From: Amphiscolops sp. MND2022
Taxonomy: Eukaryota
DNA: 64,000 nt
Direction: 5' to 3'
Assembly: GCA_964187785.1 (NCBI GenBank)
Contig: OZ076409.1
Span: 39,308,001-39,372,000, forward strand
The first letter of the stretch is position 1; every line of letters begins with the position of its first letter. Made by a program: the position numbers and the translations under genes. Shown piece after piece: positions 29,680 through 55,467 of this stretch. The notes beneath the pieces were generated by a model. That model searched no databases. It was not told where the DNA came from and saw nothing but the letters and a program-made list of their open reading frames with translations.

Positions 29680-29865
29680 ACTTTTGAGACATTCATTCCA
29701 TCGCCTCCGAGTTATTTTCATTGTATTTACATTTTGTTTTGGATTTCTTTCTGCATTTAGTATGCCATATTTAACCCTGTATGGGTCAATAAGATAAAAA
29801 AGGGCTCTGTAATACTCTAGAATGAGCCAGGACAGAAGAGATGATTTTGTCTTGAAGTTTGTTTT

Positions 29866-32800: not shown

Positions 32801-34748
32801 GGTACTCTCTCATGAAGCTTGAAAATGCCGAGAGCGATCTACTCAGTCCTTGCGCTCAGTCCTTGCGCAGGTTCGGCTTGCAAAATTGAAAGCAAGCATC
32901 TGAATGGATTGATAGTCTGCCATTTGAAGGCAGTGGTAAGCCTGGGAGCAGTCGAGTTTGCAGAAAAGTTTCTTTCCAGCCATGTGTTGTGCTGCATCCG
33001 ATAAGGTGCTCACCGGGTGGTTGTTGTTGATGTAGTCTTCTGTGATTAAGTTATTGATTTTCCGGAGGTCCACCAGGAGGCGGAGTCGGCCATTTGGTTT
33101 TCGTTGGGCGAAGATGGGACTTGCGTATTTCGAAAACGGTAGTGTTGTTATGATTCCATATTTATGTAGAAGTGCTAGTTCTACTGTGATGTCGTCTTTC
33201 AGGTTGATTGGAGTTGGCAGACTTTGGCTATAAGCTGGTCTGTCGTCATTGGGTGTAAGTTTTACTTTGAATTCGCGATTTGTTGCGATGTCAAAACGAT
33301 GTCTTGCAAAAATGTCGTGAAAGTCAAAGAGAATTTCTTCGACTTGTTGTCGTTCTTCTGGACTGAGTGTTGTGTCAGACCAGTCAAAGTTTGAAAGAAA
33401 TTGATTTTCTGGATGTTTCATTCTCTTGTGGGTTGAGTTTTTCAAGTTCCTTTAGTTCAAGGAGTTCGTTATATATTCGTTGTTGAATTGGTGTGTATGT
33501 TGTTGGATCCCCGGGGTCTTCTGGTGTGGGAAACCAATATGATTCTTGGTCTGGATTTTGCGGAGGAACTTTCAGGAGTTCATTAATGTAGATCTCAGTT
33601 GTTTCTTCGTGTTGTATCATGAAGGATAACATCGCAGGATCTACTGGTTGTATATGTTTTATCTGTTCTGGAGTGAGGATTTTGAAATCCGCTAAATGAG
33701 TATCACAGGTTATTGTGTGTGGGAGTTCAGAAAAATTGATGATTTGGTACCCGATAGCGTTGTTATTAACTGTACTGAGTGACGATGTGATAAATATGCT
33801 ATCGTGATTTTCAAATTGTGGTGAAGGTGTAACTATTCCTGTTGCATCGTGGTCTAACAGGTGTGACAATCTGCTTGCTATTGCGAGGGTTTCTCCTGGT
33901 TGTAAAGTGTATGTGTTTTCGGCAAATAGAGGCGTTGCTTGTCTTATAGCAACTTGTGAGTCTGGTTTTAGTTGCATTGAGAGATATGGGAAAGTTAGGA
34001 TGCCTTGAGTGACATCAAAAATTGCGTTATTTCTTCTGAGGAAGCATAGTCCGATTAATGGATTTGGAAGATTTCTCATTATGATGAAATTTTCTCGTAA
34101 CATGAAGTCAGCGACCTCGAATTCAAGTAGTACTGTGTCGATTAGTACTTCTTATTGACCACTGGCTACCATAATTTGGAAATTTGGCGGTGGGCCAGTC
34201 TCTTTTATTCCCTCGTTGGCAAGTATTTTGATTTTGTTTAGGTCCTGTTCAGAAATTGCACTTGTCAGGGCTCCTGTATCGATGAGTCCATCAAGAGTGA
34301 GTTTTTCGAAGTCCATCGGCATATAGTACATGTGTCGTTTTCGCTTCAAAGTCAGAGAAGTTGAAATCGGTAGGTATGACAGATTTCGTTCATGGTCAAA
34401 CTGTATATGGTTAGAGATGTCTTCGTCTAAGAGGGGTTGTTTTTGTTCATTGCAAGGAAGGGTTGTTGTGTGGTGATTTTCTGGTGTGTTGTTTGTCTGC
34501 GACTGAGTCGTTCGTGTATTGTCTGAAAAGTAGTTGTCAGGTGCATCCCGTAGGAGTTGATAATAGGACTCTTGAGGAGGTTCATTGTCGTCGGAGTCTG
34601 TTAGGTCTTGAGGTTTTGTGTCTGTTTCGTTTGTAAGTTGTTTGAGTTGAATGCTTATTGTGTCCACGTGACGCTGCCAGTCGTCTTGCGGGTTCGTGTC
34701 ATTCAACTGTAAGTGCTGGTTTTTAGTGCGTGGCGTTTCTAGTTTAAA
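29866..34748 (-). pseudogene. pol: G1 pol (PR-RT-RH-IN), several frameshifts and stops
   Basis: LIDTGA protease; KLDCSQAYH and CAQYVDD RT; VMSDAS / TDNR RNase H; HPGITK..C..C, MDILP..DVFSRY..TDLGTQF..LERTH integrase; WQGPYKV GPY/F motif. Confidence 0.95.
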
Positions 34749-36421
34749 TCCTTTGAAGAGGATTGTTGCTGTCGTTCTATTTTGGGTTTTATCGGTTTTC
34801 GTGCTTGTTTGTATGTCTCAATGACTTTCTTTTGAGCTGCTTCCGTTAGGGTCCACTTGGGTGGGCGGTTTTCCATGTTAGCACCAAAGTAGCAGTTTTC
34901 TTCTTGATGCCCAGGTGTATTACAGTTCTGCCATTTTTCAGCCTCTGGGTCTTCTTCAAGCTTTCGTCGTTTTGCCAGTTTGGAGCAATCAGCCATCATG
35001 TGACCTGTCTCTTTGCAGTAACGGCATTGGTTATTTTTGAGGGTTTTATCTGGCACTGTTTTTGGAGTCTGTGTTTTGGGTTTTTCAGTTTGTTTTTTGT
35101 TGGATTTTTCGGTTTTTTGGTCTTTTTTAGTAACAGTCATTTGAGTTTTGACAACAGGTTCGTCAGCTTCAAGACTGTTAAGTTCCATCTCCCTTTCAAG
35201 ATGTTTACCGATTTGGTCGTATGATTCGTTCTCTAAGTATGCCTGATTATTTGATTTTTTCAGATGAGGGGGCATCTTTGCATAGAGTAAGTTTTCTATC
35301 ATTTGGTGCGCTTTATCACCAAAAGCCTTTTCTGCACTTTCTTGGAGTTCCTCAAGGAAATCTGGAAGTTTCTGATTTTCGGGTTCAAATGACAGTTTGT
35401 TGAATCTGTGTTTGGCGGATGCACTAGATTCTGGTTTTACGTATTTTCGGCGGAAGACTTTTAGGATATCTTGCAAAGTTGTAGTTGGGGTACGTTGGAT
35501 GTTTTTAAATGTTTTGAGTGCTAAACTTCTGAGATGGGCATGGAAATGGTTTATTTTCATGTCTTCTGTTAGAATCGGCTGCATTCGAAGAGTTGTATGA
35601 AATAAGTCTTCGAAGTACTCAAATTTCTCGTTTTTTTCATTTCGCCCATTGAATGTTAGTGTGTTTTTCGGATGAAAGAGAGAAGGTTGCGAGTTTTTGT
35701 TTGCCAGTTTTTCTATTGCTAGTGCAATTTGGTTACCTGGGTCGAGTGACTTTGCTGTCGGATTTGACGTGTTGTGGTCTGCGTGGGATCCTGTGGTGTC
35801 ATTTAAAGACTGAGGGTTTTGTGAGCTCTGTCTATGGAGTTGTCGGTTGGCTCCTGTCACCATGTGATAATCCTCTTCCTCAGAGTCCTCATTTGAGATC
35901 ATTGTTTCGTCTAGGTCTATCTCATTACGGTACAAAGGATTTGCAGGATGTTTCAAATCCTTAGAACCTGAGGCTTTAAGAGGATAGTCCTCGTTTTCTG
36001 AGTCAGTATTTTCGAAGTTAGATGCGTGTACTCCTATGGACTTGGATCCTGATGGTTGTGAATTTTGGGCTTCAGCTGCTTCTGACCTGGGATTCGTTGT
36101 TGTAGACATGCTTTTATTGGATCTAATTTCCTTTAAGATGGACTCTAGTTTATTGTCCATTTCTTCCCTCATTTTGGTAATTCTGTCGTTGCTTTTTTGC
36201 TCTAAAATCTGCGTCCAAACTTGTATTTCGTTGCTAGTGTGACTGGGTTCAGCTAGTTGATTTTCTGAGACGTTATCACATAGATTTCCCTGTACATTCT
36301 CATTTATATTAGTTAAAGTTTCATTACCTGTGTTGGGCGTTTCTAACTGGGTATTATTGACTTCTCTCTCAGGGGAAGGTGTCTCTAATCTTCTAGAACG
36401 TCTGTTTCTCTTATTTCCCAT
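34739..36421 (-). CDS. gag: G1 Gag (560 aa), first ~186 codons inside the 5' LTR
   Basis: Capsid-like TFNGRNEKNEKFEYFEDLF...KINHFHAHLR..F RRKY; CCHC CRYCKETGHMMADC plus a second knuckle with C>W. Confidence 0.95.
   Translation of the reverse strand: MGNKRNRRSRRLETPSPEREVNNTQLETPNTGNETLTNINENVQGNLCDNVSENQLAEPSHTSNEIQVWTQILEQKSNDRITKMREEMDNKLESILKEIRSNKSMSTTTNPRSEAAEAQNSQPSGSKSIGVHASNFENTDSENEDYPLKASGSKDLKHPANPLYRNEIDLDETMISNEDSEEEDYHMVTGANRQLHRQSSQNPQSLNDTTGSHADHNTSNPTAKSLDPGNQIALAIEKLANKNSQPSLFHPKNTLTFNGRNEKNEKFEYFEDLFHTTLRMQPILTEDMKINHFHAHLRSLALKTFKNIQRTPTTTLQDILKVFRRKYVKPESSASAKHRFNKLSFEPENQKLPDFLEELQESAEKAFGDKAHQMIENLLYAKMPPHLKKSNNQAYLENESYDQIGKHLEREMELNSLEADEPVVKTQMTVTKKDQKTEKSNKKQTEKPKTQTPKTVPDKTLKNNQCRYCKETGHMMADCSKLAKRRKLEEDPEAEKWQNCNTPGHQEENCYFGANMENRPPKWTLTEAAQKKVIETYKQARKPIKPKIERQQQSSSKDLN
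34742..34748 (-). promoter_or_regulatory. G1 -1 ribosomal frameshift heptamer T TTA AAC
   Basis: gag ends GAT TTA AAC TAG and the -1 frame is open into pol (LETPRTKNQHLQLNDTN...). Confidence 0.75.
35851..35862 (-). promoter_or_regulatory. G1 primer-binding site TGGTGACAGGAG
   Basis: Abuts the LTR end ...ATCACA and is identical to the G2 PBS. It resembles the complement of a tRNA-Leu 3' end (ACTCCTGACA-CCA type) with one mismatch. Confidence 0.85.
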
Positions 36422-37327
36422 CTTTACTTGATTGAAAACATCAGTTTACGAAGGAGAAAACAGTTGAATTTCTTCAGTGAGTTGGTGAAAATATCAAACG
36501 GTTGATGATCAAAATTGTAGATGAAAGGTTTACGGATTGAGCAAAAGAGGTACAATTAAGAAGCAACTGTACTCTGTGAAGGTAGAAAACAATTCTGACA
36601 AATTCTCTTTTTGCACTCCTGGTTTCAAAAATGAAAGAATGACACTCCTTTTTATGAGAATCACGGTAGGAAAAGTACAAAAATAACATTACGTCAAAAG
36701 GACGTCATTCTATTTATATCCTGCACTCATCAGAACACGACGTTTAAAACGAACCTAATTGTCCTATTGGACCCTGGAAAGTAGTTATAAAGCGACGTAA
36801 AAAGGTATTCCAAATGATATACAGCACCGTGTATGCATTGTCTATACAGTGTGATTAATCCTGCTGAAAATGTATAATACCGTGTGTGCATCACTTCGGA
36901 AAACGTATGAACCGTATGCAGGAAAACGTATAATAACGCATATGCGTTACTCTTAAAAACGTATAATGCCGCATATCAACATTGCGCAAATCAGTATTAT
37001 GCCGTACATGCGGCACTCTACAAACTATATAATGCCGTATTGCCAAATTGAACGGAAAAGATCATTACTGTATGAATGAAATAGCAAAAACACTATAGCC
37101 CCGAAATTACGTCATATAAAGATGACTCAACTTAAGTTTCTGAATATTCATGACAAAAAGACTAACTTAACATTAACATCAAATCAAAGTGTCTTTGAAT
37201 GAGAAAAAATTTAACATTTACATGACTTCAAAAAACAAAACAAGTCTTCAAGTTTAGTTGGGTTTGGCTGCTTTTCTGTTTGTTCAGGGTTGCACTACGG
37301 CTCCATCGCAGCGCTGGGGCTCCGACA
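35863..37327 (-). repeat. G1 5' LTR (1465 bp)
   Basis: Direct repeat of 21364-22827; TG...CA termini on the minus strand. Confidence 0.95.
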
Positions 37328-38467
37328 GTATGATATCAAAAAAATACCGGATGAACTGACATTGCATATTTCGTATGAATCATCTGTCGAAGAAGTGCGG
37401 GTCGTTGTCATCGTGCATGCCATCAAACCTGTTGTCATAATAAGCGAAATATCATTGCTTGAATATCATCTGACACAATGGCGCTCTGGCAGATCGTTTT
37501 TCGGCTTCAAGCGTATTTTCCCTACTCTCTCTAGAATTTACAAAACCAAAAAACACAAATTTTTTGACGCGCTTCATGACAAAAGCGTTAAAACGACCCA
37601 TTTGCCAAATCCTTCTATATGTATGAATTTTAATCGCATCTCGACCTAAACGTTTCCCCGCTCCTAAGTTAGCACTCGAAATTTCAAATATTGAACAAAT
37701 CTACCTGGAATTGCAATCTGTATGATATCAAAAAAATACCGGATGAACTGATATTGCTGAATGAGAGACATTTATGCTTCAATCAAAACCATGCATAATT
37801 TGAAATTCTTCAAAATCTATGCACAAATGACGTTTCAAATTACGTTGCAAATTGTTTTTGTAGCTTAACAAATAACATAACATCTACGAAATGTGCCCGA
37901 CTAGTAGTTGTAACTAGCTCATTTCCTTCCAAAATTCACATTGAACAAAACGTTTGATACAGAATCCGGATCTTTTTTGTTAATTCCCCCACTAATTTAA
38001 TTTACCCCCAGTTAAGCCGTCAAGTGAACTTATCATTGAATTAATAGCAACAACCAATCAAATTGCAGTAATTCATATCTCTAACTGCAACTGAAACTCA
38101 TCGCTGATAGTGGTGGGGAATTTCCTCGCTTACTGTGGATGGGGTTATTACCGGAAAAGATCCCAGAATTCCAAAGTTATTGATTTTTCAAATTTACACA
38201 ACTCAAACAGAGCGGAAATAATTGAAAGAGACTTGATCGATGAAAGTTAATCAAATGATTGAAAGGAAAATCATTACTTTCTTTAGTTTCGAAAACCTCA
38301 AACTTGCTTTGTTATAAATCAATGAAATGCTTTCTCTACATTTCCAAACTCAAAAACTGAAAAATGCCTGTGAGCAGTAATACAATGCTGTCCAATTTGT
38401 TGACGAGAAATGTACTTGTCCTAGACATCCTGGTGTAAGTTGTTTGGTATTAATTTAAGTGTCTTGT

Positions 38468-40630
38468 TGTTGGAACTCTCGTTCCTAGACAAACTAGTTT
38501 CTTCTAGCTCTACAGTAGGATTCCCGCTACTTTCAGTCCTGGTCGTCGAGTAACCTTGTTCAGAATAAACGCTCGATAAACTGTCAACTTTGGACGACAG
38601 GTTCTCAATCAATTTTAATATCTCACGTTGATTGAGTTCAGTGTCTTTGAGACGTTTGGAAATTCTATTCTCAATTTTATTGGATATGTCTTCAAAATCC
38701 CTTTCCGAAAGTGTGGTGTTTTCGTCGTTAACAGAGCTTGCGGTTTCTACGTCGAACTGGCTAGTCGACTGGTCACTCCTTAACTTCCGTTTTTGAGATT
38801 TCTCAGGCATCTTGTAAAAATAGTGGAGGAACAATATTCCAATTAAACTTGAATCGTTACAAACGTAATGGAGGCTTCAGTTCAATGATTTTCCAAAGTT
38901 TTCCGAAACAAAAGTAATTATATTAAGCAAAGGCAATTAACTCGATTATTACAAAAGTAAAATTTTCAGAGAATGATTAATCAAACGCACTTGAAAAAAT
39001 AAAATTGTCAACTATCTTTTCCTAATCCCGCTTCAGGTATTTATACTTTACGCTAGACACGCGGAGAAAACCCCGCGCGTGAATTCACACCTTGTTCACC
39101 TCGGCGTCCTTTCCGAAGCGGGGAAATCCAAATAAGGTATTCTTCCTCGGGACTCGGCATTCGGTTTCAACCCACTTTAAAGAAAAGTGGGAATTCACTT
39201 CCTGCCGCTTCCCAATTCCGCGTCCCTTTCTTCTTCATTCCCCGCCTTTTCAAGACGCCGAAGGTGAAGTTGGCACTGAAATTCATGAACCTAGCTACTG
39301 AAGCGGGAAAAGGAAATGAAATTATCACCGAACAATCCCAAATTTTACTACTAGTAATTTAAGGGAAACATCAAAGAAATAAACTAACAGCACTGATTTC
39401 TTCTAAATCAGATGATTATGGCCGTTAATTAGCACTTTAAATTGAAGCTAACGAAAAAGTCCTGGGTGAACGCCAGGTAACGAATTTCATTTAGAGTGAC
39501 CTGGCCGTTTGACCGGGCTATTGACTCAACTATGTATTAACAAAACATTGCATGTGAGGACTGGAAAAGGCAGCACTGGGGGTTGTTTTACTATATTATC
39601 GTCAAATATCACATTTAGCAGGGGCAACATTGTTATTAGGTTAACTATAGGGCATGTATTAATTGAATACGTTCGGTCAGCTGTCCAGGCTCTTGTGATA
39701 TTAAAGAAATTTAGCGCTTCGCCTGGGAAGTTGACTCAACTACAAGGTGGACCGAACGCGTTAAAAATACTACAAGCATCATCGATTATTACTCATTGGA
39801 AGTACTTTTGGTATTTAGCTTCTTTTAAGCCACAAAACATTTATCTAAAGTTAGCATCGATTATTTGTACTTGATTGATCAGTTAGAATGACTGAACGAG
39901 CGTCCCGGCGGTCGTCCCAGATTATAAATTTAGAACGGTCGTCCCGGTGGTCGTCCCAGATTATAAATTTAGAACGGTCGTCCCGGCGGTCGTCCCAATT
40001 ATCGGGATCGGCAAATCTTCAATCACACCTTTTCATGCTATAAATATCACGTTTTCGATCTTCACTATTGAATACTGCACAATTTAAGCTTCTTCTAAGC
40101 TTTGGATTTGTATTCACTTCACACGTGACGTCACTTAATATGTTAGCACTTTGATTAATTCGATCGAGCTCCCAGGCGTGCGTCCCAGTCTTTGCTGACT
40201 GGTGGCTTGACGAGTATAGTAGCTGAGTTAATACTGCACATTCGCGCTTGGCGCTGATTGGTTAATTAAAAGGACAGTGAGAATTAATGTGTTTTGCTAC
40301 GCAGATATTGGGACGGTAGGCTGGTCAGTGCGCTGGTTGGAATAACTTCAATCAGCGTATTGGTCAAGCTACTGCAAACAAATCACATTTACAACAAGTT
40401 ATTATTATTTAATTACTTACATATTTATGTATTTCAGGTACTGCAGAGGATTGATGATATTAATATTATGCACTTACAGGGTTGTTCAATATCAATGAGT
40501 GTTTGTTTGTTGATTGTTTCCTTTCAGGTTTGTGATGGTTTATTAGCTTCTTCTTGGTTAATTTCTCCATTTCTTTCCTCTGGCGTTCTCTCTGTTCTTT
40601 TTATTTCACGGCCCTGTGGCGGCTGTGACA
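38468..40630 (-). repeat. G2 3' LTR (2163 bp)
   Basis: Same length as 52142-54304; only 4 substitutions noticed by eye. Confidence 0.97.
39901..39997. repeat. 39-bp tandem repeat (2.5 units) in the G2 LTR; copy at 53575-53671
   Basis: Unit CGTCCCGGCGGTCGTCCCAGATTATAAATTTAGAACGGT. Confidence 0.92.
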
Positions 40631-41228
40631 GTCCCCTTCTTTGATGGGAGACGTCCATTGTGGGAAGAAGTGGTGAAATTGGCCTGAATGGGGAAGAGAT
40701 GGGAGGTTGAAATATAGACTGTACCATTGAATCATAAGACATCCAGGACGAATCTGTTGACCAGTCACTTCCTGAGAAGTAACCTATCGAACTAGAGTTA
40801 CTAGAGATGGGGCTTATTGTCCCATCGTGCGGCCCGTATAGCCAATTGTCCATATTCTCGTAGTTTCTAGGGGGGCTCATGAATTCGTCATCCGGGATAA
40901 TTGGGTTGAAGTTTGTAAATTTCCTGGATGGTAATGTATCTGATTGGGCTGTTTCTAGTATAGATATCGGCGCCGACTCATGGTAAAGGACAATATGTTC
41001 TGTCCCAGTATTGATAATCTCGTAAATATCCTCGATAATTGGTGTTTGAGTATTTTCGCAATTATCACCAAGCGCTGTAGGTGTTGAATGTGCGCGGGGG
41101 TTTACTGGGGCAGCGTCTTGGTCGCGGTCCAAAATGAAATAATCGGTTGAGGAATTGAGTGTCGATGAATTCATTTGATCCGATGAGTAAATAAATTGTA
41201 TGCAATAAATAGTAATAGTTGTAAGCAA
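40524..41228 (-). CDS. G2 ORF3: Ser/Pro-rich protein of unknown function; ends inside the 3' LTR
   Basis: 234-aa ORF at the same position as G1 ORF3; crosses the PPT/LTR junction as Q-R-R-G-L-S. Confidence 0.6.
   Translation of the reverse strand: MLTTITIYCIQFIYSSDQMNSSTLNSSTDYFILDRDQDAAPVNPRAHSTPTALGDNCENTQTPIIEDIYEIINTGTEHIVLYHESAPISILETAQSDTLPSRKFTNFNPIIPDDEFMSPPRNYENMDNWLYGPHDGTISPISSNSSSIGYFSGSDWSTDSSWMSYDSMVQSIFQPPISSPFRPISPLLPTMDVSHQRRGLSQPPQGREIKRTERTPEERNGEINQEEANKPSQT
40631..40642 (-). promoter_or_regulatory. G2 polypurine tract AAAGAAGGGGAC
   Basis: Immediately 5' of the TGTCACA start of the 3' LTR. Confidence 0.85.
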
Positions 41229-41456
41229 TGCTGAGCGGCTGTTCTGCGGAATGGTCGAGTAATTGAATGATAATTCCGTTCTTTTCTTCTGTTCACGCCG
41301 CTTGCATGAATGGGAAAGTTTTCAGCTGGCAGACTGAATGACTTCCATTACGTCATACTAATAGTATCGAATAATAATAATCTCATTGGTTTTACGCCAC
41401 GTCTTCTGTTGGTTTATCTCGGTAGTTATCTTTTAGATTGCTTTGGATAGTAGAAA

Positions 41457-44400
41457 ATGGCTGAGTCGACTGATGAGGATGCCGCGCGCTTTATGCGTTC
41501 GCGGGAGATTGGAGTATTGGAAAGTGAGTTCGAGTCGCGGGGCGGTGATGGAGAAAATACGGAGTGTGAGTTGACTTCTGGGAACGAGCAAGGATTGGGT
41601 GACGACAGTTCTGCTGCTGAGGGTCAATTGGTGATCGCAGAGGAGTCAGCTGATGTTGATCGTGAGGAAGTAGCACAGTCTCCTGTGATTGCTGGTTCTG
41701 CTGTTCGGCCCGCGGCTGGTTTCGGCCAGATTGACGAGAGTGATAGTGGAGAAGGCGATGTTGAAGGAGATGGAAACTGTGGCAACTCGGATCATTCCAC
41801 TGAGAGTGACAACAGACATTCTCTGGATTATCTTTGTGACCGACAGGGTAAGTCCTTTAGCTATTTGTTAGTGGCCAGCTAACAGTTTTATGCTAGTAAA
41901 CAGACGCGTCATTCTTCTAATGGAATATGGGTTTTGTGCAGGTGATAGTGATGATCCTCGTGATGCAGATTTTGTACCCGGTAGTTCTGTCGGTGGTTCT
42001 GGTGGGCGCCGTAGCAAGCGATTGCATTCTGTTCTTCCGGATGAGGCTACGAAACGCTCTCGGGTGTCTGTTGTGGATTCATCAGATGACGAGGGTAGTG
42101 ATGACTCACTGTTTCTGCAGTTGCCCAAATCCAGTAGGTATTCGTTCTGTCATGGTCGTGTTACATCAGGACTGGTGATGTTGAGTATTGATTGTTTTCC
42201 AGGTAATGCTTCGCCGATGCGTGGTGCGGGTACTCACCATGAGTCTGGTCCAGCTTCTGGCGATGTGACTTGCGGGACGTCTGCTAGCGTGGGTGGCACT
42301 GTTGCTTTCGAACCCGGGCCCTCTTCTGGGAAATCTCGGGAGCGCACCCAGCATTCTCGGCCTAGTGTAGGTCTGGAGCGTTCAGTCCTCCACAATGAAT
42401 GGGAGAAAGGTAACTATTTTTGGCGTTATGAACTTCGCTGCTTTATTTCCATGTCCTTCTTCGTATGCTCTGTAGGCTTGTGTCTCATCCTGGTTGGTTT
42501 CTTTAGCGGGTCTCTCGGATATCCCAGCTGGAGCGGTGTGCCTGTCCTCCTCACAAGTGCTGGCTTTCGGGCAGGCTGCTGTTCGACTGGAACGGAGTCA
42601 GAAACGGGAAGATGATCGTAGTCTGTCAAAACGTTAGTTTTCGTTGCATTTGAGTTTATTTATGTGTTTGTTGGTTGATCTATCGTCTGGTCTGTTCTCA
42701 CATTACTGGTTGTCTTCTATCAGTGTATGCTTTGGTGTATTGGTTTGTTTGTGTGTTTAGGTCTCACTGAAATCGTCCGCCTGTTGAAGTCAAAAGGGAT
42801 TTACATGCAGTCCAGACAGTCCCAGATAAGTGTGGAAGAAGAGACAAAACGCCGGCTCTTTGCTAAGTATGAGAGGAGGAAACTGCGACAAGTGGAGCGG
42901 AATGTACTGCGAAAGGAAATGGCTAGTCATCCATTGCCGCAGCTATTTGTGAGTCGCAGATCTGACCGGAATCCCAATGGGTTCAATTGTGCTGTGTGTC
43001 GCCGAGACGTGTCTTTCCTCAGTCGGGGTGAGCCGGAGATTTGGCGTCACTTTACCCGCAAGAGCCATTTCTTAAAGGATCGGCGTTATCGTCTGGACCA
43101 CGAAGATGTACTGTATACTACCCGATTCGATGAAGTGCCTGTGTCGTCTATTTCGGCTGAGTTGCGTGCAGAGATCGAGGAGACTCCTGTGGTAGTCTTG
43201 GGCAAGAAGAATCCTTTCATAGAAGATGAGGTCGATGCGTTAGTTGGGGTGGTGTCCAACGTGCCATCTTCAACTCTGGTTGGAGGCCTATTTGAATTGC
43301 TTCGGAGTGGGGGTTCTCATCGTTTTCTGAGACGGTTGTGGAGCCAATTTCAAGCGGCACTTCCAGTGGATTCAAATTGCGCGCAGGCGACCTGGAGCAA
43401 GACTGAAACGTTGGTGATTATTGGACAGACTCTATACCCCCGGATTCTCCGCCGGGTGCAAGGATGGGTGAAGGATTCCTTTGCCAGTGTTAGTCTGCGG
43501 GAGGATCGTGATGGTTTGCGTTTCAATGTACACTGTTTTGCTAGTGGTACTCTGCGTGAAGTTTGCATTTTGTGGGAACCTAACTCGCCGGGTCTCTGTG
43601 ATTCTGAAATTATTGGTCTGACGCGGATATTTGCAATTCTACCAGCCGGGCAGTCACCTGTTTGCCTGCGAGGGTTTTCATCGACTCTCTTCAATGTGGT
43701 GACCGAATGGTGTGTCGAGCAGTGTCGCCCCAAGCCCATGTTCATTTCTGAATATACCCCAAAAGTATTCAAAGAGCATGTGCAAGAAGCTGGTAAAAGT
43801 GGTTCTAGTGCTCTGGACTGCTTCGCTCTTCTGGACTATCTGTTGTTGCGTTTACAACGTGCTGTAAATCAGTCTTGGATGCTTGGACTTGCGACCTTGC
43901 GCCGTTGCATTCAACAGCGAGATATCCCTTTCACCTCTCTCAGTGTTGTTCTCGATGAGATCGTCAGTCATTGGGGAGATATTAAATTGTTCTTGGGGGA
44001 GGGTGGTGTTGTCTCGTCATCCCGGAGCAAAGTTCCGCAGGACCTGAGTCAGATGGTGTTGGCCGATGACCATATTTTGCCCCGACTGTGTGTGCTTCAA
44101 GTGCTGGTTCTGTGTTTCATGGCCAATTTTGAGAAACAGTTCGTGATGGAAATTACCGACTACAGTTGTCGAAATTATAGTGAATTCTGCTTCTTTTATT
44201 GGAGTCTTCTTGGCAAAGTTAAGAAGCTGTCCGAACTTCCTGAAATTGATGCCTGGAGCGAGTATGTCGGCAAACCCTTGACTACCTGGTCAAACCTCTC
44301 ATATGCGGAGTGTCTGGTTGGAGAGCCCATTGTGGTGAAGGCATTGGTTGGATCTACTGCTGCACTACGTCGTTCTTTCCTTCGCGAGGGTCACTCGCTG

Positions 44401-45384
44401 CTCATGGGATTTTTGAGAGTGTTGAATGAATCTGCCTTTATGAATTCTCGCTTGTCCTCCAGTTTGAGTTGTTTTTCGCCGGATATGTTGCTTCTTGGCG
44501 AGGAATCATATACTGTTGAGCTCTTTCGTGGTCTGGTTGCTTGTTACCTAGAGTGTGGACGTTTGACTGATGTAGAGGCCGAAGGGTCCTGTAATGAATT
44601 CAAGTCCTTCTTAGTGGAATTGCGTCGACGGAATCGCCGAGTGGTGTCCAACATCAAAGACACTTTTAGCTTCATGCGGGAGTCTGAGGCTTTCGGTTGT
44701 CGGGACCATTTGTCGCGTGTTGTTCAGTTGTCCTCAGTTCTGGTGGTACCCCGTGAGGTGTCATATCCTGATGTGGATATCTCGTTGAGTGGTGTAGCTG
44801 TTCCAGCAAAGATTCTTACTTCAGCTATTCTCTCTGTGCAGTCTTACGTTTCCTTCTCTGGGTTCAGTTCCGGGGAGTTGTTGACAAAAGACTGTCTGGA
44901 TGATTTAAAGGTCAATCTCCCTGCTGGAAAGAGTTTCATCGATGACGTTAGTTTCTCTCCATGGACATCGGTATATCAGCATTGCCACCAGGAGTTGTAC
45001 CGCAGTTTGCGTGATCGTTTCGACGCGTATTTCCTGGAACAGGTGGATGATTGGCGTCATCGTCTGGGCACTCTGTCAAAGATGGCTGTTGCAGGTACTG
45101 GTGGTTCTAGTGTTGCGCCGTCTGCCGATGCTGCTGTTGTCAGTCCGCAAGCTGGGGCAAGTGTGTCCCGTGATGCTGGTAGTATTCAAGGTGTTTCTCC
45201 CAGTGCGCCACCTCCTTCAGCTGCTAATGTTGTTGATAAGTCGCTACTGATGTGTAGTCCTGTGCGGTCAAGTGACGTTACCCGGGTTTTGCAGCAAAGA
45301 CGCCAGGAACGGAAAGAAATGTTGTCTTCGAATCAAGCTTCATCGAGTGCTTCAAAGGACAAGAAGAAAGGAAAGAGGCGATGA
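41457..45384 (+). CDS. G2 antisense 5-exon gene: 1174-aa zinc-finger, hAT-transposase-like protein (probably catalytically inactive)
   Basis: Exons 41457-41847, 41942-42133, 42203-42409, 42507-42617 and 42761-45384 total 3525 nt with no internal stop; all four introns are GT-AG, phase 1. Acidic N-terminus, FNCAVCRRDVS..H..RKSH finger, hAT-like blocks and a basic C-terminus KDKKKGKRR. Confidence 0.8.
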
Positions 45385-45706
45385 TGATTTCATAATTTGT
45401 TGGAACGTTGAACTGTGTATCTTTATAGTTTGGTCTTTATTGTTGTTGGCACTTTGTCTACTTTGTTCTGTATTATGTATGTTGTTGAATGGGCTGAGGT
45501 CTTTTAATCAAATGTAGTTAGTATTGCAGCCAAAGAAAAGGGAATGGATATATTTGTCCGTAGTGGGCATGGAGAGTCTGTAGTACATTTTTGGCTCTTT
45601 GTATTGTTTTTCCTTGAGTGCGTAGACGAGTTGTAGGGATTTGAGTCAGTTTTAGGTCAATTGAGTGAGTAGTAGGTGTACCATTTCATGAATTCATATT
45701 GGAAGT

Positions 45707-48700
45707 TTATTCATTTGAGCTAACAACCATTGGGTTGTAGTAGGCGTAGTCCCTTTTCCAATTTGAAGGGGGGTTGCTGCGAAGGTTATATTTGCCTTTG
45801 CGGGGGGAACTAGGCTCTGGGTTTGGGTTGGGTTCTGGTTGGGATTCCTGTTGTTCGGGTTGGGGTTCCGTTAGGATATCGTGGGTGTCATCCTGGGCAA
45901 TGTTTTCTAAGACGTCATGACTATCTGTCGGGTTGATTGCCGATTCGTTGTTGGAATCGTGGTTATGGGTCATCACAAAGTGTTCAAACCCTGATTGCCA
46001 GGCTAGGGCGTATAGATCATCGTGTAGGATTTCGACTTCATCGTCTGGTTGAAAGTCCTTGGTTTGAACTTGTATATCGGAAAGGCGATTTTTCGTGGGA
46101 CATGGTTTCAGTCGTATTCTGTGTAGAATTTGGGTCTTGTTCGTTTGTAATTTACGAACTAGGTAGTTGTTGTTGGGAAGGGTTTTAACTACTACGAATG
46201 GTCCTGTCCATAAATACTCGCGGAAAGGTAGTTTCGATCCCTGGTTGTTTGCCTGGGGGTGTAAGGCGTAGCAGTAGTCGTTTGCTGCTAGGGGGTGGGC
46301 AGAAGCTTTTTTATCGTAGTACTGTTTGTACCGTATGTAGGAGTGGAGGAGGTGTTTGGTTACTGATTGGTGTATCATCCGGGTCTTCTGGACGACTTCT
46401 TCGCCTATGTCTGTTTTTGGGTTTTGAGTTTGGTTCTGTTTGAGACCGAACTTTAAGTCAAGCACATTGTATGGTATTCTGCCATGGAATACTCTACTGG
46501 GTTCGCACCCTAGTGCTGAGTGGTAGGTTGTGTTGTAGTTTAGTGTGGCGGTTGGTACGAACTGGTGCCACATTGTTCTCCTTTCTCCTGTTGATATTTT
46601 CAGGGCTTCTTTTAAGGATGCATGACAGCGTTCTAGGATACCAATTGTTTGGGCATGTTTGGTAGTTGCGTGTCTCAATTGGATGCCTAGAACGCGTGTG
46701 GTGTCAGCCATTACTTCGGACATGAATTGAGTTCCTTTGTCAGTTATGATCGTTGTGGGCAGGTAAGCATGTCTTGTCATTATGTCTACCAGTACTCTTG
46801 CGATCGAGCGGGCATCTATTTTGGTGACACAATAGGTAAATAGATAGCGGGAAAAGACGTCCATGGCGGTGACTATCGCTGTGAATCCGTTGGATGGCTC
46901 GTCGAAGGGGACGATGTCCATTTGTAGGGCATCTTCGGGTCCCATTGCCAGTTTGGACGTGTCGATCATTGGTGGGGTTAGGAGGCGATTGTCTGTTCGT
47001 TTTGTTTGCATGCATTTCATGCATTGGTTGATATGTTTGGCTATCCTTGCTGCGAGACTTGGGTAGTAATACTTTTCTCTGCATTGTTGTATTACTTTCG
47101 TTATTCCCGGGTGTTTGTTATGCATTCCATGGTGTGCCTCGATGAAGGAGTCGACCAGATGCTCCGGGAGTAGTACTTGCAGGTGTTTGACTGTTCCGGT
47201 TTCTCCGAAGTACTGCCGGTATAGCAGCCCGTCCTTGAGTATGATTCTCGATTCTTGCGCTGTGTAACGGAGTGCCCTGTGGTCTGTGGCCATCAGGTGT
47301 TCATCGTATGGTTCCTTGAGGAGGCGCAGTTTGTAGTTTCTGAGGACACTGTCTTGGTCCTGTTGGTGTCGCATGTCAGTTGGGAGGGTGTTTTCTTTGT
47401 CTTCGGTGGTTTTGTTGTGTCTTGTTATTTCCGTTTGAAATATGACTGTGGTGTCTTCTGTTTGGACTGTTTCATTATTTGCTTCTTCTCCTGGCGTTGG
47501 CGGGGTGTCGTTCCCTAGAATTTTCTTGCGGGCTCTTTGCTTCCTCTCCCAAATCTGTTCTTCGGTTTCAATATCATCGTCGGGGAGGAAGTAGAACTGT
47601 TCCTCTTCTGCGACGTTGGAGGATTGAATGTGCACCTCTATTGGTGTTGTTTGAATGTCGTCTCGGATCAAGAGTTGGACTTTTTCCTTTGGGTCTAGGT
47701 CAAGTCGGGAAAGGAAATCAGCTGCGGTGTTCATGCGCCCTGGGACGTGGGCGATCGTAAAGTTGAATTGTAGGACGAAATCGCAGGCGTTCCACAAGGC
47801 TGGTGGTATTATTTTGGTTTGAAAAAACCGTGTGACGGACTTGTTGTCTGTTAGGACGATGACCGGTTTGGTCGATCCCCACAATATGTGGCTGTATTCC
47901 ATGAAGGCGAAATATATAGCCAAGAATTCTTTGGCATATATTGACATTTTGATTTGGGACGGAGAGAATGTCTTGGAACCAAACGCTACCGGGGCGTAAG
48001 TCTTTTTAACTGAGGTCAGTTTTTCATCAGCGTTTTCTTCAATCATGAGGGCGTAGCCTGCATTTTTGAAGTTCGCGTCTGTCATGAGGACGTACTGTTT
48101 GTTGGGTAGTGGTTGTTTCAGCCATAGCCCACAAGCGTTGTCAAGTGCCTTGTTGATGTTGTCAAATGTCCCTATGATCTCGTTTGTGATCTTGATTGGT
48201 TTGTCTGCCTTGACTAATTCGTGGAAGGGTGCTATCTTTTCGGAGAGGCGAGGTATGTAGTTTCGATAATAATTAACGAAACCAATATACCTCTGGAGGC
48301 CCTTTTTGGTTTTTGGGAACGACAGTTTTTGTAGGTAGTTCTTGATCTTGTGACTCTGTGGGGCGATTCCTTCGGGTGAGACTGTTCGTCCTAGGAATTC
48401 GACTTCCTTGGCACCGAACTGACATTTAGCCATTGTCAGACGCAGACCTGCTTCTCTTATGCACTGAAAGACCTCACGCAGGTTGTTCTTCAGCTCCTCG
48501 GCAGTATGGGTAGCTATCCCGATGTCGTCGACGTACTGGGCGCACTTGTCGGCTTTGATGACTCGGTCAAGGTATTCCCGCATAAAGCTCGAGAAGGAGG
48601 AGAGAGATCTGCTGAGCCCTTGTGCGAGTCGCAGGTAGGCGAATGTCCGACTGGCAAAGTTGAACGCCAGGAGTTCCACTGATTTCTGTCCGCCATTTGC

Positions 48701-51081
48701 AGGACATGGTAGGCTTGAGAACAGTCAAGCTTGCAAAACAGTTTCTTTCCGGCTAAATGCTGAGCTGCATCCGAGAGGGTGCTCACAGGGTGATTATTGT
48801 TTATATAATCGTCGGAAATGAGGTTGTTGATCTTTCGTAAGTCAACTAGCAATCGTAGGCGTCCGTTTGGTTTTCTTTGGGCAAATATTGGGCTTGCGTA
48901 CTTGCTGAAAGGGAGCGTGGTGATTATGCCGTAGTAGTGCATTAACGCCAATTCGACTGTCAAGTCGTCTTTCAGGTTGACTGGGCAGGGTAGGCTTTGA
49001 GTGTACGCTGGCTGTTCGGATTTGGGGGTGAGCTTTATTTTGAATTCGTTGTTAATTCCGATATCAAGACGGTGCCTTGCGAAGATATCGTTGTATTCTA
49101 CAAGGATTGCTTCTATGTCCTTTTTGTCTTCATCACTGAGTTGTGAATCCGTCCACTTGAAATTGGATAGGAAAGTTGCTCTGTCCTCAGGGCTGTCATG
49201 AGGATTGAGTTTCTGGATGTTTTCCAGTTCTTCTATCTCTCTCAGTATCCTGCTCTGGATAGGTGTGTGTGTTGATGGGTCTCCTGGGTTTTCCGGTGTG
49301 GGGAACCAGAAATTTTGAACAGTCTGAGGCTTTTCAGACGATTTGAGGAGTTCGTTTACGTATTCTAGCGCCTGTTCGGAATCGTCTTCTGCTAATACCT
49401 TTAGGGCTGCAGAGTTGAGTGGGTGGAGTTGCTTGGCTTCCTGGGGGGATAGAATGGTGAATTCTGCAAGATTTGTGTTCTTTTTGAGGGTGAATGGATT
49501 TGGAGATGTGTTGGTAACCCTGATTTCGATTTTGGAGTTTGTGACTGTTGATAGAGAGCTGGCTACTACCAGTTGGTGTTCTCCGGAGTATGGTTCAGTA
49601 GGGTTGATGATTCCTGTGGTGTTTGTCAGGGTACGTAGGTTGATGCCGGCTTCAATTGTTACACACTGGTCGGGCATGATGGTGAGTTGGGTTTTGGTAG
49701 TGACTTTATGGTGTCTTGAGATTGTCTCGTTATCGTCTGCAGAAATTGCGTAAGTCAGGTGAGGGAAATGTAAGAGGGCCTGACTGACGTCGAGGATTGC
49801 GCTATTGTTTTTAAGAAAGGTGAGTCCGAGGATGGGCCCTGTCATCTTTGTGGCTACGATGAACGTCTCTTTGAACGTCCAGTCGCCTAGTTCAAATTGT
49901 AGTTGAACTGTTTTTGTGGGGGTTTCTATTTCGCCGTTTGCGACCTGCAATTTAAATGTTGGTGGATCCATTTCCTTGAGGATGTTGTCTGGGCTTACCG
50001 TTTTGATTTTCTGGAATTCACTTTCTGGTAAGCAGTTGACGAGTGCTCCGGAGTCAACAAGCGCGTCAACTGAAATGTTGTTGAAATCCATCGGGGCGAA
50101 GAGCATTTTCCTTTTCTTTTTCAGATTGATGGCCGAAAAAATTGGTATGCATTTTTCGCTTGTTTCTGGGTCTGTAATTGCAATTTCATGCAATTGTTTG
50201 TTGGTTTGAATCCATTCTTCATCTTGTTCTAGATTGGTTGGCTCTTCTCTTGAGGTTTGGGTAGTGATGAGTGGGCTGTTTGTCGGTGTTTTAGCTTCTG
50301 TTTGCTGATTGAATTCGCAGGTCAGAGTTCGTTTGACGCGGCGAGTTCTCGGTTGTGTTGTGGGTTGACTTGCAATTGTTTGGTCCCCGGCTTTTGCGTC
50401 GTCAACCAGGGTTTTAGGGGTGGAGTATTTATGTTCAGGACTCTCTGGACTGGAGGGGGACGACGTCATAGCTGCCCGGATTTCATTGGGGGTGGCTGGG
50501 AGTTTCGTGGGTGACTGGAAGTCAACCAGTGGCGATTGATTGTTGTGTTTGAGGATTGACTTGAGGGAAGTCGTTGGGGGTGTTACGATCACAGTGATTT
50601 CTGTGTCGTATTCTTCTTCAGCCTGTGGTTCGGGAGTATGACTGAGGTCGTCTTTCCTTCTTGGAGTTGTCGAGATGTCCATGTTGGTTTTGGCTATGAA
50701 TTCATGAAATGGTACGTTGATTGACTGTCTGAAGACAAGGTTTGTTGAGTCATAGAGAGTGTCGTTGTAGTATGGGTCGCATTCGAAGTCGGGGTCGTAG
50801 ATGTAAGTTTCGGGTGTGGAGCTGGGAAGTAAAGGTCTGCGTGTTGTGTTGTATTGGGTGGGGTTTTGGGTGTACCAGTCTGGATAGGGGAGTTTGTCCA
50901 AGGTGTTTTTGTTGAATTTGATGATGCGTCTTATGAGCCATCGTCGCTGCCAGTCGATCGATGGTTCACCTGAGCATTCCATAAATAATTCCTTGTCGAA
51001 GTCCTTCGGGGGTTCAGATATGGTGTAGTATCTGAAGTCGGTGTAGTCCCCGAAGCGAAGACGTGGCTTTAGTAGTTTTTT
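45707..51081 (-). CDS. pol: G2 Pol (long N-terminal spacer, PR-RT-RH-IN); one frameshift near 48688
   Basis: ALVDSGA; KLDCSQAYH; CAQYVDDIG; VLMTDAN..TDNK; HPGITK..C..C; MDIVP..DVFSRY..TDKGTQF..LERCH; WTGPF. ORFs 48514-50982 and 45707-48679 join if one base is restored in MAD(Q)KSVELLAFN. Confidence 0.96.
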
Positions 51082-52508
51082 GGCTGGTATTGTGGTTGTT
51101 CCACGGTTTGTGGCTGCTGATTTGCTGAAGGTTGTTGGATAGTTTCGGGTGCAGAGTGTTGTGGTAGGGGTATACTGTTGGCGCCTGTTGGTTTAGGCAT
51201 TTTCCACCATGTAGGGCGGTTTGCCCAGTTCGCCCCAGAATAGCAGTCTTTAGTCTCGTGGCTTAATTTGCCACATGTTTCGCAGGGATCGGTGATGTTA
51301 TTGCTGGGGGGTTTTTGGTTCCGTTTGTCTCGGTTTGTCTTCCTGCAGTTGCGGAGGAGGTGGCCCTGGTGTCCGCAGCCAAAGCACGTGCTTGCAGTTT
51401 TCGGGTGTCTCCCCTGATTGGATGTGTTGGCGGGTTCGACATTGTGTATGCCGGTAAATGTAGTGGATTCTGGATTTGCCAATCCGTTGAGCTCCATCTC
51501 CCGCTCTAGGTGCTGGACCATCGTTTCATATGATGCTGTTTCGAGGCGTGCCTGATTTAACACTCTTTTGAGATGTATCGGCATTTTTGCGTAGAAGGAG
51601 GTTTCTATAAACCGGGGTGCATCGTCGGCGTATGCCTCTTGGGCAAGTTTCTGGTAGTTCTCCAAGAAATCTTGGAATGTTTGGTTCGCCGGGTCGAATG
51701 TGAGGTTTTCCCACTTACACCTAGCAGTGGCTATTGACTGGGTTTTTACATATCGTCGTCTGAATCCGGCGATGATGTCGTTCAGGTTGGTTTTGGTTGT
51801 TTCGGTCATGTTCCGAAAGGTTTGCAAGGCGTCTCCTCGCAGTAGGGAGTGGAAATAATGTATTTTCTCTTGCTCCGTTATTTGGGGATGGACCTTCAAG
51901 CTTGTTTGAAACAAATCCTCGAAGAGTTCAAACTTTTCGTTTTTGCCGTCGAATGTTGGCATTGTCGTGGCAAGCGTTTTTGGTAGACGGGGTAATTGTG
52001 CTGTCTGTTGTTGTGTTGCATACAGGGATTCTAACAGCTTGTCAATGATTTCGTCGGAGTGCCTCTGGTTTGGAGGCGGCAGGCTCGAAGACCGGGGGTG
52101 GGTGTTGCTGGAGGTCGGTTCGCTAATTACTCCTGTCACCATGTTGGAACTCTCGTTCCTAGACAAACTAGTTTCTTCTAGCTCTACAGTAGGATTCCCG
52201 CTACTTTCAGTCCTGGTCGTCGAGTAACCTTGTTCAGAATTAACGCTCGATAAACTGTCAACTTTGGACGACAGGTTCTCAATCAATTTTAATATCTCAC
52301 GTTGATTGAGTTCAGTGTCTTTGAGACGTTTGGAAATTCTATTCTCAATTTTATTGGATATGTCTTCAAAATCCCTTTCCGAAAGTGTGGTGTTTTCGTC
52401 GTTAACAGAGCTTGCGGTTTCTACGTCGAACTGGCTAGTCGACTGGTCACTCCTTAACTTCCGTTTTTGAGATTTCTCAGGCATCTTGTAAAAATAGTGG
52501 AGGAACAA
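51069..52508 (-). CDS. gag: G2 Gag (479 aa), first ~122 codons inside the 5' LTR
   Basis: MPTFDGKNEKFELFEDLF..KIHYFHSLLRGDALQTF; two CCHC knuckles CFGCGHQGHLLRNC and CETCGKLSHETKDC. Confidence 0.96.
   Translation of the reverse strand: MFLHYFYKMPEKSQKRKLRSDQSTSQFDVETASSVNDENTTLSERDFEDISNKIENRISKRLKDTELNQREILKLIENLSSKVDSLSSVNSEQGYSTTRTESSGNPTVELEETSLSRNESSNMVTGVISEPTSSNTHPRSSSLPPPNQRHSDEIIDKLLESLYATQQQTAQLPRLPKTLATTMPTFDGKNEKFELFEDLFQTSLKVHPQITEQEKIHYFHSLLRGDALQTFRNMTETTKTNLNDIIAGFRRRYVKTQSIATARCKWENLTFDPANQTFQDFLENYQKLAQEAYADDAPRFIETSFYAKMPIHLKRVLNQARLETASYETMVQHLEREMELNGLANPESTTFTGIHNVEPANTSNQGRHPKTASTCFGCGHQGHLLRNCRKTNRDKRNQKPPSNNITDPCETCGKLSHETKDCYSGANWANRPTWWKMPKPTGANSIPLPQHSAPETIQQPSANQQPQTVEQPQYQPKNY
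51075..51081 (-). promoter_or_regulatory. G2 -1 ribosomal frameshift heptamer A AAA AAC
   Basis: gag ends CCA AAA AAC TAC TAA and the -1 frame is open (KKLLKPRLRFGDY...) into pol. Confidence 0.75.
52130..52141 (-). promoter_or_regulatory. G2 primer-binding site TGGTGACAGGAG
   Basis: Abuts the LTR end ...TCCAACA. Confidence 0.88.
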
Positions 52509-54304: not shown

Positions 54305-55467
54305 CTTGTCCTAGTGAACACTTTGAGAACATTTTCAGAGATACTTTTTTGCCACAGCTCTACTACTTGCATTGAAAGTCTTTTTACTGATCCAATTGAA
54401 TAATTTTCACTGGAGCCACCGTCTTAAGGTACCATTTAGGCCCTGTTAACCGTGATAAATATGTATTGGAAGTTGAAAGTTTCATTTCCCTTGGATAATA
54501 AAAGCAAAACATATCAATTAATGAATTACTTTATATACAAAATATCCATTAAAGATTCTTATCCCGAAGAATCAACTAAAAGGCACACTTTTTCGCGACA
54601 TCGAAACATAGAACACGGAGAGACTTTTAAAAAAGTTTCAAAAGTTGATAATTGTCAACGATGTAGAGTCTTTCAAGTTTTTAGTCGGCGTTTTCGAAGA
54701 AAATCCCGACTCTTACAGTGGCTAGTTTTTTTTCGTCAGTTCAACGCGAAACGTCCACTTTTGTGCATTAATGCACATTTACGATCTTTTACCATATGTA
54801 CTTAGTACTTCTTTTTCAACGCATCCAAAGCCTCTAACTTGAGATAAAAAGCCATTCCAAAGCAGAAGGGTCCACTTTTTTCGACACTGAAACTTTCCTC
54901 TTTTTTTCGGCACTGTGAGACTGATTTTTTTCTGAATTTTTTTCAATTGTTCCTCCCATCAATTTTTGATATTTTGCAACAGAATGGATGTTCAAAAAAA
55001 CCCAAAGCGTCCCCCTTTTTACATTTTTCGGCACTATGCGAATTACCGGAAACTTCAAAAAAAAATTCGAAAAAAATTCGGAATTTTTTTTCTCAATTTT
55101 TAGTTTTTTTGAGAGCTTTTGTTGTCTCCAGTTGTAGAAAAAGTGGTTTTCGTTTTCGAGTCTTTTGAGCCTTAGATATGGCGCCGACTTGGGTCGTTCC
55201 CGGCTTGTTCTATATAGGTACGTATTTGTGATTTGGTCATCAAATGCATGTCACAGGGTAAAAGATTGAATTGACTTGACCAATTGTAATTTTTGCATTT
55301 TGAAGGCATTTTCTTTTGAATAACCTACGTCCTTTAGCCAGTGGTAATGAATAAATCCTTCGAAAGTGGTAATGAATAAATCCTCCGAAATCTCGTTGTT
55401 ATGCGCCTAGTTAACAGTAGTTTCAAGTTGGGCAAATTGGCAATTACATACCACATATTTCATTACA

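Follow-up and report, generated by a model that had tools for sequence, protein, structure and literature searches.

In plant genomes, several Ty3/Gypsy long terminal repeat (LTR) retrotransposons carry an additional open reading frame (ORF) antisense to gag-pol in the interval from pol to the 3' LTR, including gene23 of maize Grande, an ORF of rice RIRE2, and ORF4 of Silene Retand (TRP28/PF04195) (PMC7264820, PMC11963269). These antisense ORFs are conserved within lineages, have a promoter of their own where this has been studied, and in Grande encode a nuclear product, and their function is obscure (PMC7264820, PMC11963269). A gene with the same position and orientation is present in a 64,000-nucleotide stretch of the Amphiscolops sp. 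MND2022 assembly (GCA_964187785.1, contig OZ076409.1, positions 39,308,001 to 39,372,000 of the forward strand; the whole stretch is referred to as the window), where it is carried on the + strand by a Ty3/Gypsy element of the - strand, designated G2. In contrast to the plant ORFs, for which no transposase fold is recognised and introns are not mentioned (PMC7264820, PMC11963269), this antisense gene has a predicted five-exon structure, and its product appears from a structural model to have the fold of a hAT DNA transposase. Pfam scans revealed no sequence relationship between the plant ORFs and the antisense gene.

Antisense genes are also known from complex retroviruses. The HBZ gene of human T-cell leukemia virus type 1 (HTLV-1) is spliced, and it differs from the present gene in encoding an unrelated basic leucine zipper factor of a vertebrate retrovirus, expressed from a promoter in the 3' LTR rather than an internal one. 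HBZ and its counterparts in other complex retroviruses resemble the present gene in being protein-coding genes of the minus strand located near the 3' LTR, and they regulate the retroelement and its host cell (cited in PMC7264820). A further parallel is offered by the LTR retrotransposons of bdelloid rotifers, which have captured modular ORF3s (GDSL lipase, DEDDy exonuclease, and env-like) downstream of pol; these are expressed from spliced messages, are not reported in antisense orientation, and include none derived from a transposase (PMC5408684).

For the encoded protein itself, the closest counterparts are hAT transposases and their domesticated descendants. Host-domesticated hAT transposases, such as the ZBED family, DAYSLEEPER, and GTF2IRD2, have lost catalysis while retaining the BED finger and the helical domains, and serve as DNA-binding regulators; they are single-copy host genes, whereas here the domesticating entity would be a multicopy mobile element. 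Hermes and other hAT transposases (2BW3, 4D1Q, 8EDG) show apparently the same fold and domain order, namely an N-terminal Cys2His2 (BED-like) finger, a helical DNA-binding domain, an RNase H-like core into which a large all-alpha domain is inserted, and a helical C-terminal part (architecture in PMC6027215). The antisense protein differs from them in being only about 11% identical, in giving no Pfam or profile match, and in having non-acidic residues at two Asp positions of the D-D-E triad; its gene lacks terminal inverted repeats (TIRs) and an 8-bp target-site duplication (TSD), is copied by a retrotransposon, and encodes an extra acidic N-terminus of 305 amino acids (aa) in four small exons. 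A full-text literature search found no description of a hAT-like or hAT-derived gene in a retrotransposon. As an antisense accessory gene of an LTR retroelement, the gene is of a known kind; its content is unprecedented and its population structure unusual.

It is proposed here, with a probability of roughly 60%, that a hAT transposase-derived gene entered the G2 lineage in the distant past and has since been kept by the element as an accessory gene, antisense to gag-pol and located between pol and the 3' LTR. An earlier interpretation of the same DNA made without database searches, hereafter the sequence-only reading, had likewise described an intact, transposase-derived antisense gene belonging to the Gypsy element rather than nested in it, and the position of the gene, the predicted fold, and the non-acidic Asp positions all support this description. 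If true, the domestication of a DNA transposase by a retrotransposon constitutes a new route of gene flow between classes of mobile elements, and animal LTR retrotransposons gain an accessory gene that bears comparison with the ones found in complex retroviruses, with a folded protein, a conserved finger, and many natural variants that make it experimentally tractable.

Relatives of the locus, designated by L numbers, were retrieved through intact ORFs of homologues (26-98% protein identity) from two metagenome-style ENA assemblies. Eight other loci from two samples were obtained, in seven of which the gene stands tail-to-tail with a Gypsy pol at a distance of 290-470 nt; the eighth, the 4-kb contig L007, stops short of any pol. 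The association of gene and element is old, because the pol identity of the carriers to the window falls from 98% to 54%. The possibility that the segment is a separate nested insertion with its own TIR and TSD, which the sequence-only reading had raised against itself, was examined: no such structures surround the gene, inverted repeats in 40631-45750 occur at chance level only, no 8-bp target duplication is present, and the gene occupies the same position in every relative examined. No long sense-strand ORF overlaps the antisense gene that could account for its conservation. The + strand of the gene shows the G- and T-rich skew of the pol region, unlike DNA outside the elements, which fits long residence and replication within the element.

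A homologue also exists in G1, the second and older Gypsy element of the window (21364-37327, - strand; TSD GTATG), whose LTRs (21364-22829 and 35863-37327) are about 98% identical, whose primer-binding site starts with the same 12 nt as that of G2, and whose pol is broken into several ORFs. The antisense homologue of G1 (26498-29484, + strand) is collinear and frame-broken, 22-32% identical, and retains the same C-x2-C-x16-H-x5-H spacing; it is matched with an hhalign probability of 95% and hidden Markov model E-values from 1e-16 to 4e-4. Among the family members in sequence collections, clusters of the gene at 90% identity contain tens of members each, mostly full length among the members listed. 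One Logan member of a gene cluster is a 36-aa piece whose contig has no DNA similarity to the window, and a search with pol yielded unnamed ENA proteins only. The antisense gene is an integral component of the element lineage and corresponds to an aORF-3R (sensu PMC7264820). The pol of L005 (12836-16108) contains an integrase segment in duplicate together with a further, incomplete hAT-like gene (residues 553-851, with about 65% identity to that of the window); this element is a rearranged or nested copy.

The + strand between pol and the 3' LTR of G2, antisense to and downstream of pol, contains ORFs at 41457-41882, 41890-42615, and 42727-45384, and the peptide strings listed in the sequence-only reading are present in the 885-aa translation. 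That reading joined 41457-41847, 41942-42133, 42203-42409, 42507-42617, and 42761-45384 into 3525 nt encoding 1174 aa; its five exons and four phase-1 GT-AG introns stand, and the length has been revised to 1179 aa after a shift of the fourth donor site. The donor at 42618 (GTAGTC) is not conserved, being AA in L005 and GC in L002, whereas the phase-1 donor 15 nt downstream at 42633 is conserved in every lineage, reading GTTAGT in the window and GTAAGT or GTGAGT in L005, L002, L006, L001, L003, and L007; exon 4 is therefore assigned to 42507-42632, and the five codons gained (RSLSK) are homologous to RSLLK or RSVFK in relatives. The predicted gene is composed as follows.

41457-41847, + strand: exon 1, with the ATG at 41457; acidic, Ser/Gly-rich, and probably disordered
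41942-42133, + strand: exon 2
42203-42409, + strand: exon 3
42507-42632, + strand: exon 4, followed by donor 42633 (GTTAGT)
42761-45384, + strand: exon 5, including the stop codon and encoding all structured domains

Exons 2-4 have lengths that are multiples of three, and the introns measure 94, 69, 97, and 128 nt. In the window, L004, and L009, conservation extends to the start codon and to every one of the eight splice dinucleotides, and in L005, L002, and L006 seven of the eight align cleanly (acceptor 2 of L002 and L006 is unaligned, and donor 4 is at the revised site). The conserved part of the proteins compared shows only 59-98% identity, and the part encoded by exon 1 about 35-40%. Homologous exons sit in different reading frames from locus to locus, with similarity ending at the predicted boundaries. 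Between the window and L009, exons 1-4 are equal in length, with no indels in 916 nt despite 19-28% divergence, and all eight indels fall in the introns, none of them a multiple of three. In L003 and L007, intron 3 is absent and the frame reads through as ...HNEW(Q/E)K-A-GLG..., which is exactly the exon 3/4 junction predicted for the window. Gene-finder ORFs begin at different in-frame ATGs across subfamilies, so exon 5 by itself lacks a conserved start. On these comparisons, the splicing structure is regarded as established short of RNA evidence, the agreement being far beyond chance.

Introns lying antisense to the genomic (sense) RNA are not spliced from that RNA. The introns of the antisense gene are accordingly copied faithfully in each retrotransposition, as their orientation in the genomic RNA prevents removal, and the layout is a natural counterpart of the antisense-intron cassettes used as retrotransposition reporters. 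The fused exons 3 and 4 with intron 4 kept, at L003:248-442 and L007:694-885 (sample ERZ1742291), reflect either a precise loss, possibly through a spliced antisense cDNA, or an intron gain in the other lineages. Intron 1 (41848-41941) shows 8.6% divergence between the window and L009, compared with 19-27% in the flanking exons and 29-43% in the other introns, and it may contain a regulatory element or represent a recombination patch.

Purifying selection was estimated by the NG86 method as the ratio of nonsynonymous (dN) to synonymous (dS) substitution rates. In the structured core of exon 5, dN/dS is 0.05 between the window and L009 (dN 0.09, dS 2.0) and 0.18 between the window and L004; exons 1-4 give 0.22, and in deeper pairs dS is saturated with dN of 0.2-0.5. 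The test of dN/dS across genomic copies proposed in the sequence-only reading has thus returned 0.05-0.22 across the compared elements, and these substitution patterns indicate that the antisense gene is under strong purifying selection.

Two rival explanations are confronted by these observations. The gene could be a passenger, that is, a hAT transposon or a host gene nested in or transduced into a single Gypsy copy with no role in the element, as transduction of host sequence by LTR retrotransposons does occur and the window has many nested insertions; this is barely credible given the lack of TIR and TSD, the same position and introns in carriers from two samples whose pol is 54-98% identical, and in G1 as well, the dN/dS of 0.05-0.22 with saturated synonymous sites, and the tens of members in each 90% cluster, most of those listed being full length. 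Regulatory, non-coding antisense transcripts of retroelements are documented (PMC7264820), and the conserved signal might correspondingly reflect a non-coding antisense transcript acting in self-regulation through double-stranded RNA (dsRNA) or small RNA, with the ORF incidental. Such an explanation is highly improbable, as indels respect the frame in exons only, dN lies far below dS, the ORF remains open at 43-98% protein identity in 38 clusters, and a confident globular fold is predicted; a regulatory RNA role may exist in addition to the coding one.

The predicted fold provides the link to hAT transposases. An AlphaFold2 model built with 23 sequences has a mean predicted local distance difference test score (pLDDT) of 74, mostly above 85 in the core, and displays in order a beta-beta-alpha finger, a helical domain, an RNase H-like topology (residues 241-344), and about 430 helical residues. 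In a Foldseek search against the PDB, the 12 best matches are without exception Hermes hAT transposase chains (E 1e-4 to 6e-3, probability 0.99-1.0), aligned over 516-626 columns with template modelling (TM) scores of 0.38-0.56 normalised to Hermes, and the next PDB match has a probability of 0.13. The sole credible match in the viral structure library BFVD is a Pandoravirus protein annotated with a hAT dimerisation domain (probability 0.98). A hAT transposase fold is thus supported by the model, and the hAT-type correspondence noticed by eye in the sequence-only reading is borne out at the level of fold. The more specific link to DUF4371/ZNF862 drawn there found no counterpart in sequence, with no Pfam match at E<=10; the finger described there as C-x2-C-x~15-H-x5-H is conserved, with the spacing corrected to x16. 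The predicted domains are listed below, with residues numbered in exon 5.

42988-43068, + strand: zinc finger C-x2-C-x16-H-x5-H (C76, C79, H96, H102), predicted beta-beta-alpha
43213-43473, + strand: helical domain, residues 151-237, the presumed DNA-binding domain
43474-43812, + strand: RNase H-like core, residues 238-350 (b1-b2-b3-a1-b4-a2-b5-a3)
43813-45087, + strand: all-alpha region, residues 351-775, matching the hAT insertion and C-terminal domains, with W372 and the motif P-x-V-[DE]-I-S-x-S-G

The finger ligands are conserved in 21-22 of 22 sequences, with pLDDT of 53-85 at this site and zf-BED undetected by Pfam at E<=10; at this threshold there is likewise no sequence-level link to Dimer_Tnp_hAT (PF05699). 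Word-indexed searches of 5.8 billion proteins, with one sequence and with the profile, returned only unnamed ENA members of the same family, and an exhaustive profile search of 1.84 billion representatives gave 828 matches, of which the 150 listed are fragments or C-terminal halves of the family. JGI metagenomes and IMG/VR yielded no relative of the antisense protein, and the sources searched contain no family member that is named or that comes from NCBI or UniRef. Outside the structured domains, the N-terminus encoded by exons 1-4 (305 aa) contains 59 D/E against 30 K/R, and the C-terminal tail is basic.

Active hAT transposases are defined by residues corresponding to D180, D248, R318, W319, and E572 of Hermes (PMC6027215). 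In the antisense protein, position 246 in beta-1, the first Asp by register, is Q, R, K, H, or L and thus non-acidic in all 23 sequences, in agreement with the absence of the first catalytic Asp noted in the sequence-only reading, and position 305 after beta-4, the second Asp by register, is C in 21 sequences and F in two. W372 is invariant at approximately the distance expected of the hAT Trp, but is preceded by A, P, or S instead of R. The loss of the terminal Glu motif claimed in the same reading is doubtful, because an acidic residue, D/E672 in the motif P-x-V-[DE]-I-S-x-S-G, is present in 23 of 23 sequences of the main family (A1), though the distant branch A2 has not retained it. Between variants, the finger (70-95% identity) and residues 151-237 (71-97%) are the most conserved structured domains and the RNase H-like core (29-77%) is the least, a pattern expected of a transposase that keeps DNA binding while losing catalysis.

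That the protein has remained active as a nuclease or transposase by means of a non-canonical active site, and serves the element in, for instance, a DNA-level step, could be argued from the complete hAT architecture, the invariance of the acidic residue 672 in the main family, the spacing of W372, and the strong selection over the whole protein. This is nevertheless quite improbable: the residues at the catalytic Asp positions by register are Q/R/K and C/F in 23 of 23 sequences, the RNase H-like core is the least conserved structured domain, residue 672 is not kept as acidic in A2, and no inverted repeats surround the gene or the element on which such an enzyme could act. With both catalytic Asp positions apparently substituted, the protein is probably not a transposase.

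The variation of the gene among closely related elements is a further characteristic of the system. Relative to the window, L009, L005, and L006 are 97% identical in gag-pol DNA and 90-92% in the segment that runs from the downstream portion of the LTR up to where the antisense gene starts, while their antisense proteins are 83%, 69%, and 60% identical, respectively. When five elements are compared with one another, pairwise pol identity is 97-99% throughout, whereas the gene is 58-76% identical at the DNA level in every pair except window/L004. The same disparity is seen in clustering at 90% identity, where a single pol cluster contains 234 members and the gene is divided into many clusters of 19-104 members each. 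Identity drops sharply near 41380-41420 and is regained near 45620-45660, only a small island around the start codon being conserved at the near edge, so that the variable block coincides with the antisense transcription unit.

41380-45640 (approximate boundaries), + strand: hypervariable cassette, comprising the whole antisense transcription unit, with 59-76% DNA identity between elements that have flanks of 90-98% identity

The substitutions in the cassette are strand-symmetric (A-G about equal to C-T) and rich in transversions, with a transition/transversion ratio of 0.8-1.5. This spectrum and the saturated synonymous sites argue for old divergence recombined onto similar backbones rather than local hypermutation. 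Hypermutation, for example through editing of sense-antisense dsRNA, would account for the coincidence of the variable block with the antisense unit, where such a duplex could form, and is improbable in view of the symmetric spectrum without strand bias, the divergence of introns 2-4 to the same degree as the exons, the dN/dS of 0.05 with saturated dS that fits long divergence, and the independent reassortment of other blocks in the LTR. The transcription unit thus exists as deeply diverged variants placed by recombination on near-identical gag-pol backbones, a pattern that points to selection for diversity at this gene and suggests conflict with the host or between elements. A second variable block of about 600 bp lies in the LTRs (39324-39936, and 52998-53610 in the 5' LTR), unalignable or less than 50% identical between flanks of 87-97% identity; its boundaries are the same in L009, L005, and L006, and it assorts independently of the gene variant. 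This block was considered as the cognate binding site of the protein and rejected, as L009 and L006 share it at 96% identity with genes that are 59% identical.

One possible interpretation, itself doubtful, is that the cassette is a swappable specificity or immunity module, consisting of anciently diverged alleles of a transposase-derived DNA-binding protein maintained by diversity-favouring selection (an arms race with host silencing or exclusion of co-resident elements) and moved by recombination, similar to env modules exchanged between retroviruses and immunity regions exchanged between lambdoid phages. If true, it would be the first accessory gene that a retrotransposon has domesticated from a DNA transposon and that divides an otherwise uniform element into functional types. 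The contrast between hypervariable cassette and uniform backbone also provides a comparative test of whether the host, competitors, or the element itself limits and directs retrotransposons.

Several observations weigh against the proposed acquisition and domestication of a hAT-derived gene by the G2 lineage. The retrieval of loci through intact ORFs introduces an ascertainment bias. The fold match has modest TM scores at about 11% identity, and a model of the distant C-terminal-half branch A2 has a pLDDT of 61 and gave no significant Foldseek match. Pfam gave no relevant match for the window protein (E<=0.1), for the 23 aligned members (E<=10), or for 10 distant relatives, and neither phmmer nor a profile search found a PDB sequence match, Hermes included. 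The catalytic positions were assigned by secondary-structure register and motif spacing instead of superposition on Hermes, and the acidic residue 672 is invariant in A1. Expression, the transcription start, the poly(A) site, and the four splice junctions rest on comparison, and no AATAAA occurs between the stop codon and pol. The target duplications (CTTGT, GTCAA, ATATC, GTATT, and GTATG) and flanks of five full-length copies share no common target, repeat, or TSD consensus, and the variable block of the LTR, a candidate binding region, does not covary with the gene variant.

Under the proposed acquisition by the G2 lineage, the protein would retain a BED-like finger, a helical domain, an RNase H-like core, and an all-alpha region arranged as in Hermes, and would act as a nuclear, probably multimeric, catalytically inactive factor binding DNA or chromatin sequence-specifically, with the acidic, disordered 305-aa N-terminus contacting host factors. 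Expression of the gene would be driven by a separate promoter within the spacer of about 230 bp between it and the divergent ORF3. As to its role, regulation of the transcription or silencing of the element, by analogy with internal-promoter and antisense regulators of complex retroviruses, is the likeliest of the roles considered and is put forward tentatively; a tether that guides integration is unlikely, and a self-repressor or immunity factor more unlikely still.

The carrier G2 is a complete, recently inserted LTR retrotransposon of 15.8 kb (38468-54304, - strand), whose 2163-bp direct repeats (38468-40630 and 52142-54304) are 99.8% identical in a self-comparison of the window, begin and end with TG..CA, and are flanked by the 5-bp target duplication CTTGT. 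The order of Pfam domains on the - strand, namely Retrotrans_gag/DUF1759, gag-asp_proteas, RVT_1, RT_RNaseH, Integrase_H2C2, rve, and Integrase_p58_C, together with the LTRs, identifies G2 as an element of the Ty3/Gypsy type. Apart from the antisense gene, its features, including protease (PR), reverse transcriptase (RT), and integrase (INT), and its surroundings are arranged as follows.

38463-38467 (left) and 54305-54309 (right): target-site duplication CTTGT
38468-40630, - strand: 3' LTR of G2, 2163 bp, TG..CA, including the variable block 39324-39936
40524-41228, - strand: ORF3, a conserved accessory ORF of the sense strand, without known domain
40631-40642, - strand: polypurine tract AAAGAAGGGGAC (- strand letters), abutting the 3' LTR
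45707-50982, - strand: pol (PR-RT-RNase H-INT), in two ORFs in the G2 copy
51069-52508, - strand: gag (DUF1759 / Retrotrans_gag), with the ORF start inside the 5' LTR
52130-52141, - strand: primer-binding site TGGTGACAGGAG (- strand letters), adjoining the 5' LTR
52142-54304, - strand: 5' LTR of G2
20267-21363, 37333-38467, and 54305-58456: tandem-repeat and flanking DNA around G1 and G2

Relative to L004, L006, and L009, the pol of G2 is split within RT by a 1-nt deletion at about 48687, giving ORFs at 48514-50982 and 45707-48679; pol is thus broken in a copy whose LTRs are 99.8% identical, yet whose antisense gene is intact. The start of the gag ORF lies within the 5' LTR, at a depth of about 370 nt (52142-52508), and the 3' LTR (38468-38834) consequently duplicates the N-terminus of gag (ORF 38421-38834); the layout recurs in G1, where gag starts at 36421 within the LTR 35863-37327. 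No tRNA genes were found in the window.

ORF3 encodes 234 aa from a TTG or 216 aa from the ATG at 41174, and extends about 100 nt into the 3' LTR. The product is Ser/Pro-rich and has no Pfam match, and its motifs IYEII.T..HIVL, NP(I/V)IPDD, SSxGY(F/W)SGS.W, FRPISPL, and GLSQP, among others, are found again in other subfamilies with identities as low as 39%. ORF3 and the antisense gene are divergently oriented on either side of their spacer, and G1 contains an ORF3 counterpart at 22784-23842 on the - strand.

G1 and G2 were inserted about 1.1 kb apart in a single unit of a tandem repeat of about 2985 bp, the next unit of which occupies 55468-58456, and the flanks of related elements elsewhere match this repeat only in short, scattered pieces. 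At 9177-14838 on the + strand, the window contains a third region resembling an LTR retrotransposon, with gag, protease, and RT-RNase H matches and short direct repeats at 9177-9340 and 14674-14838.

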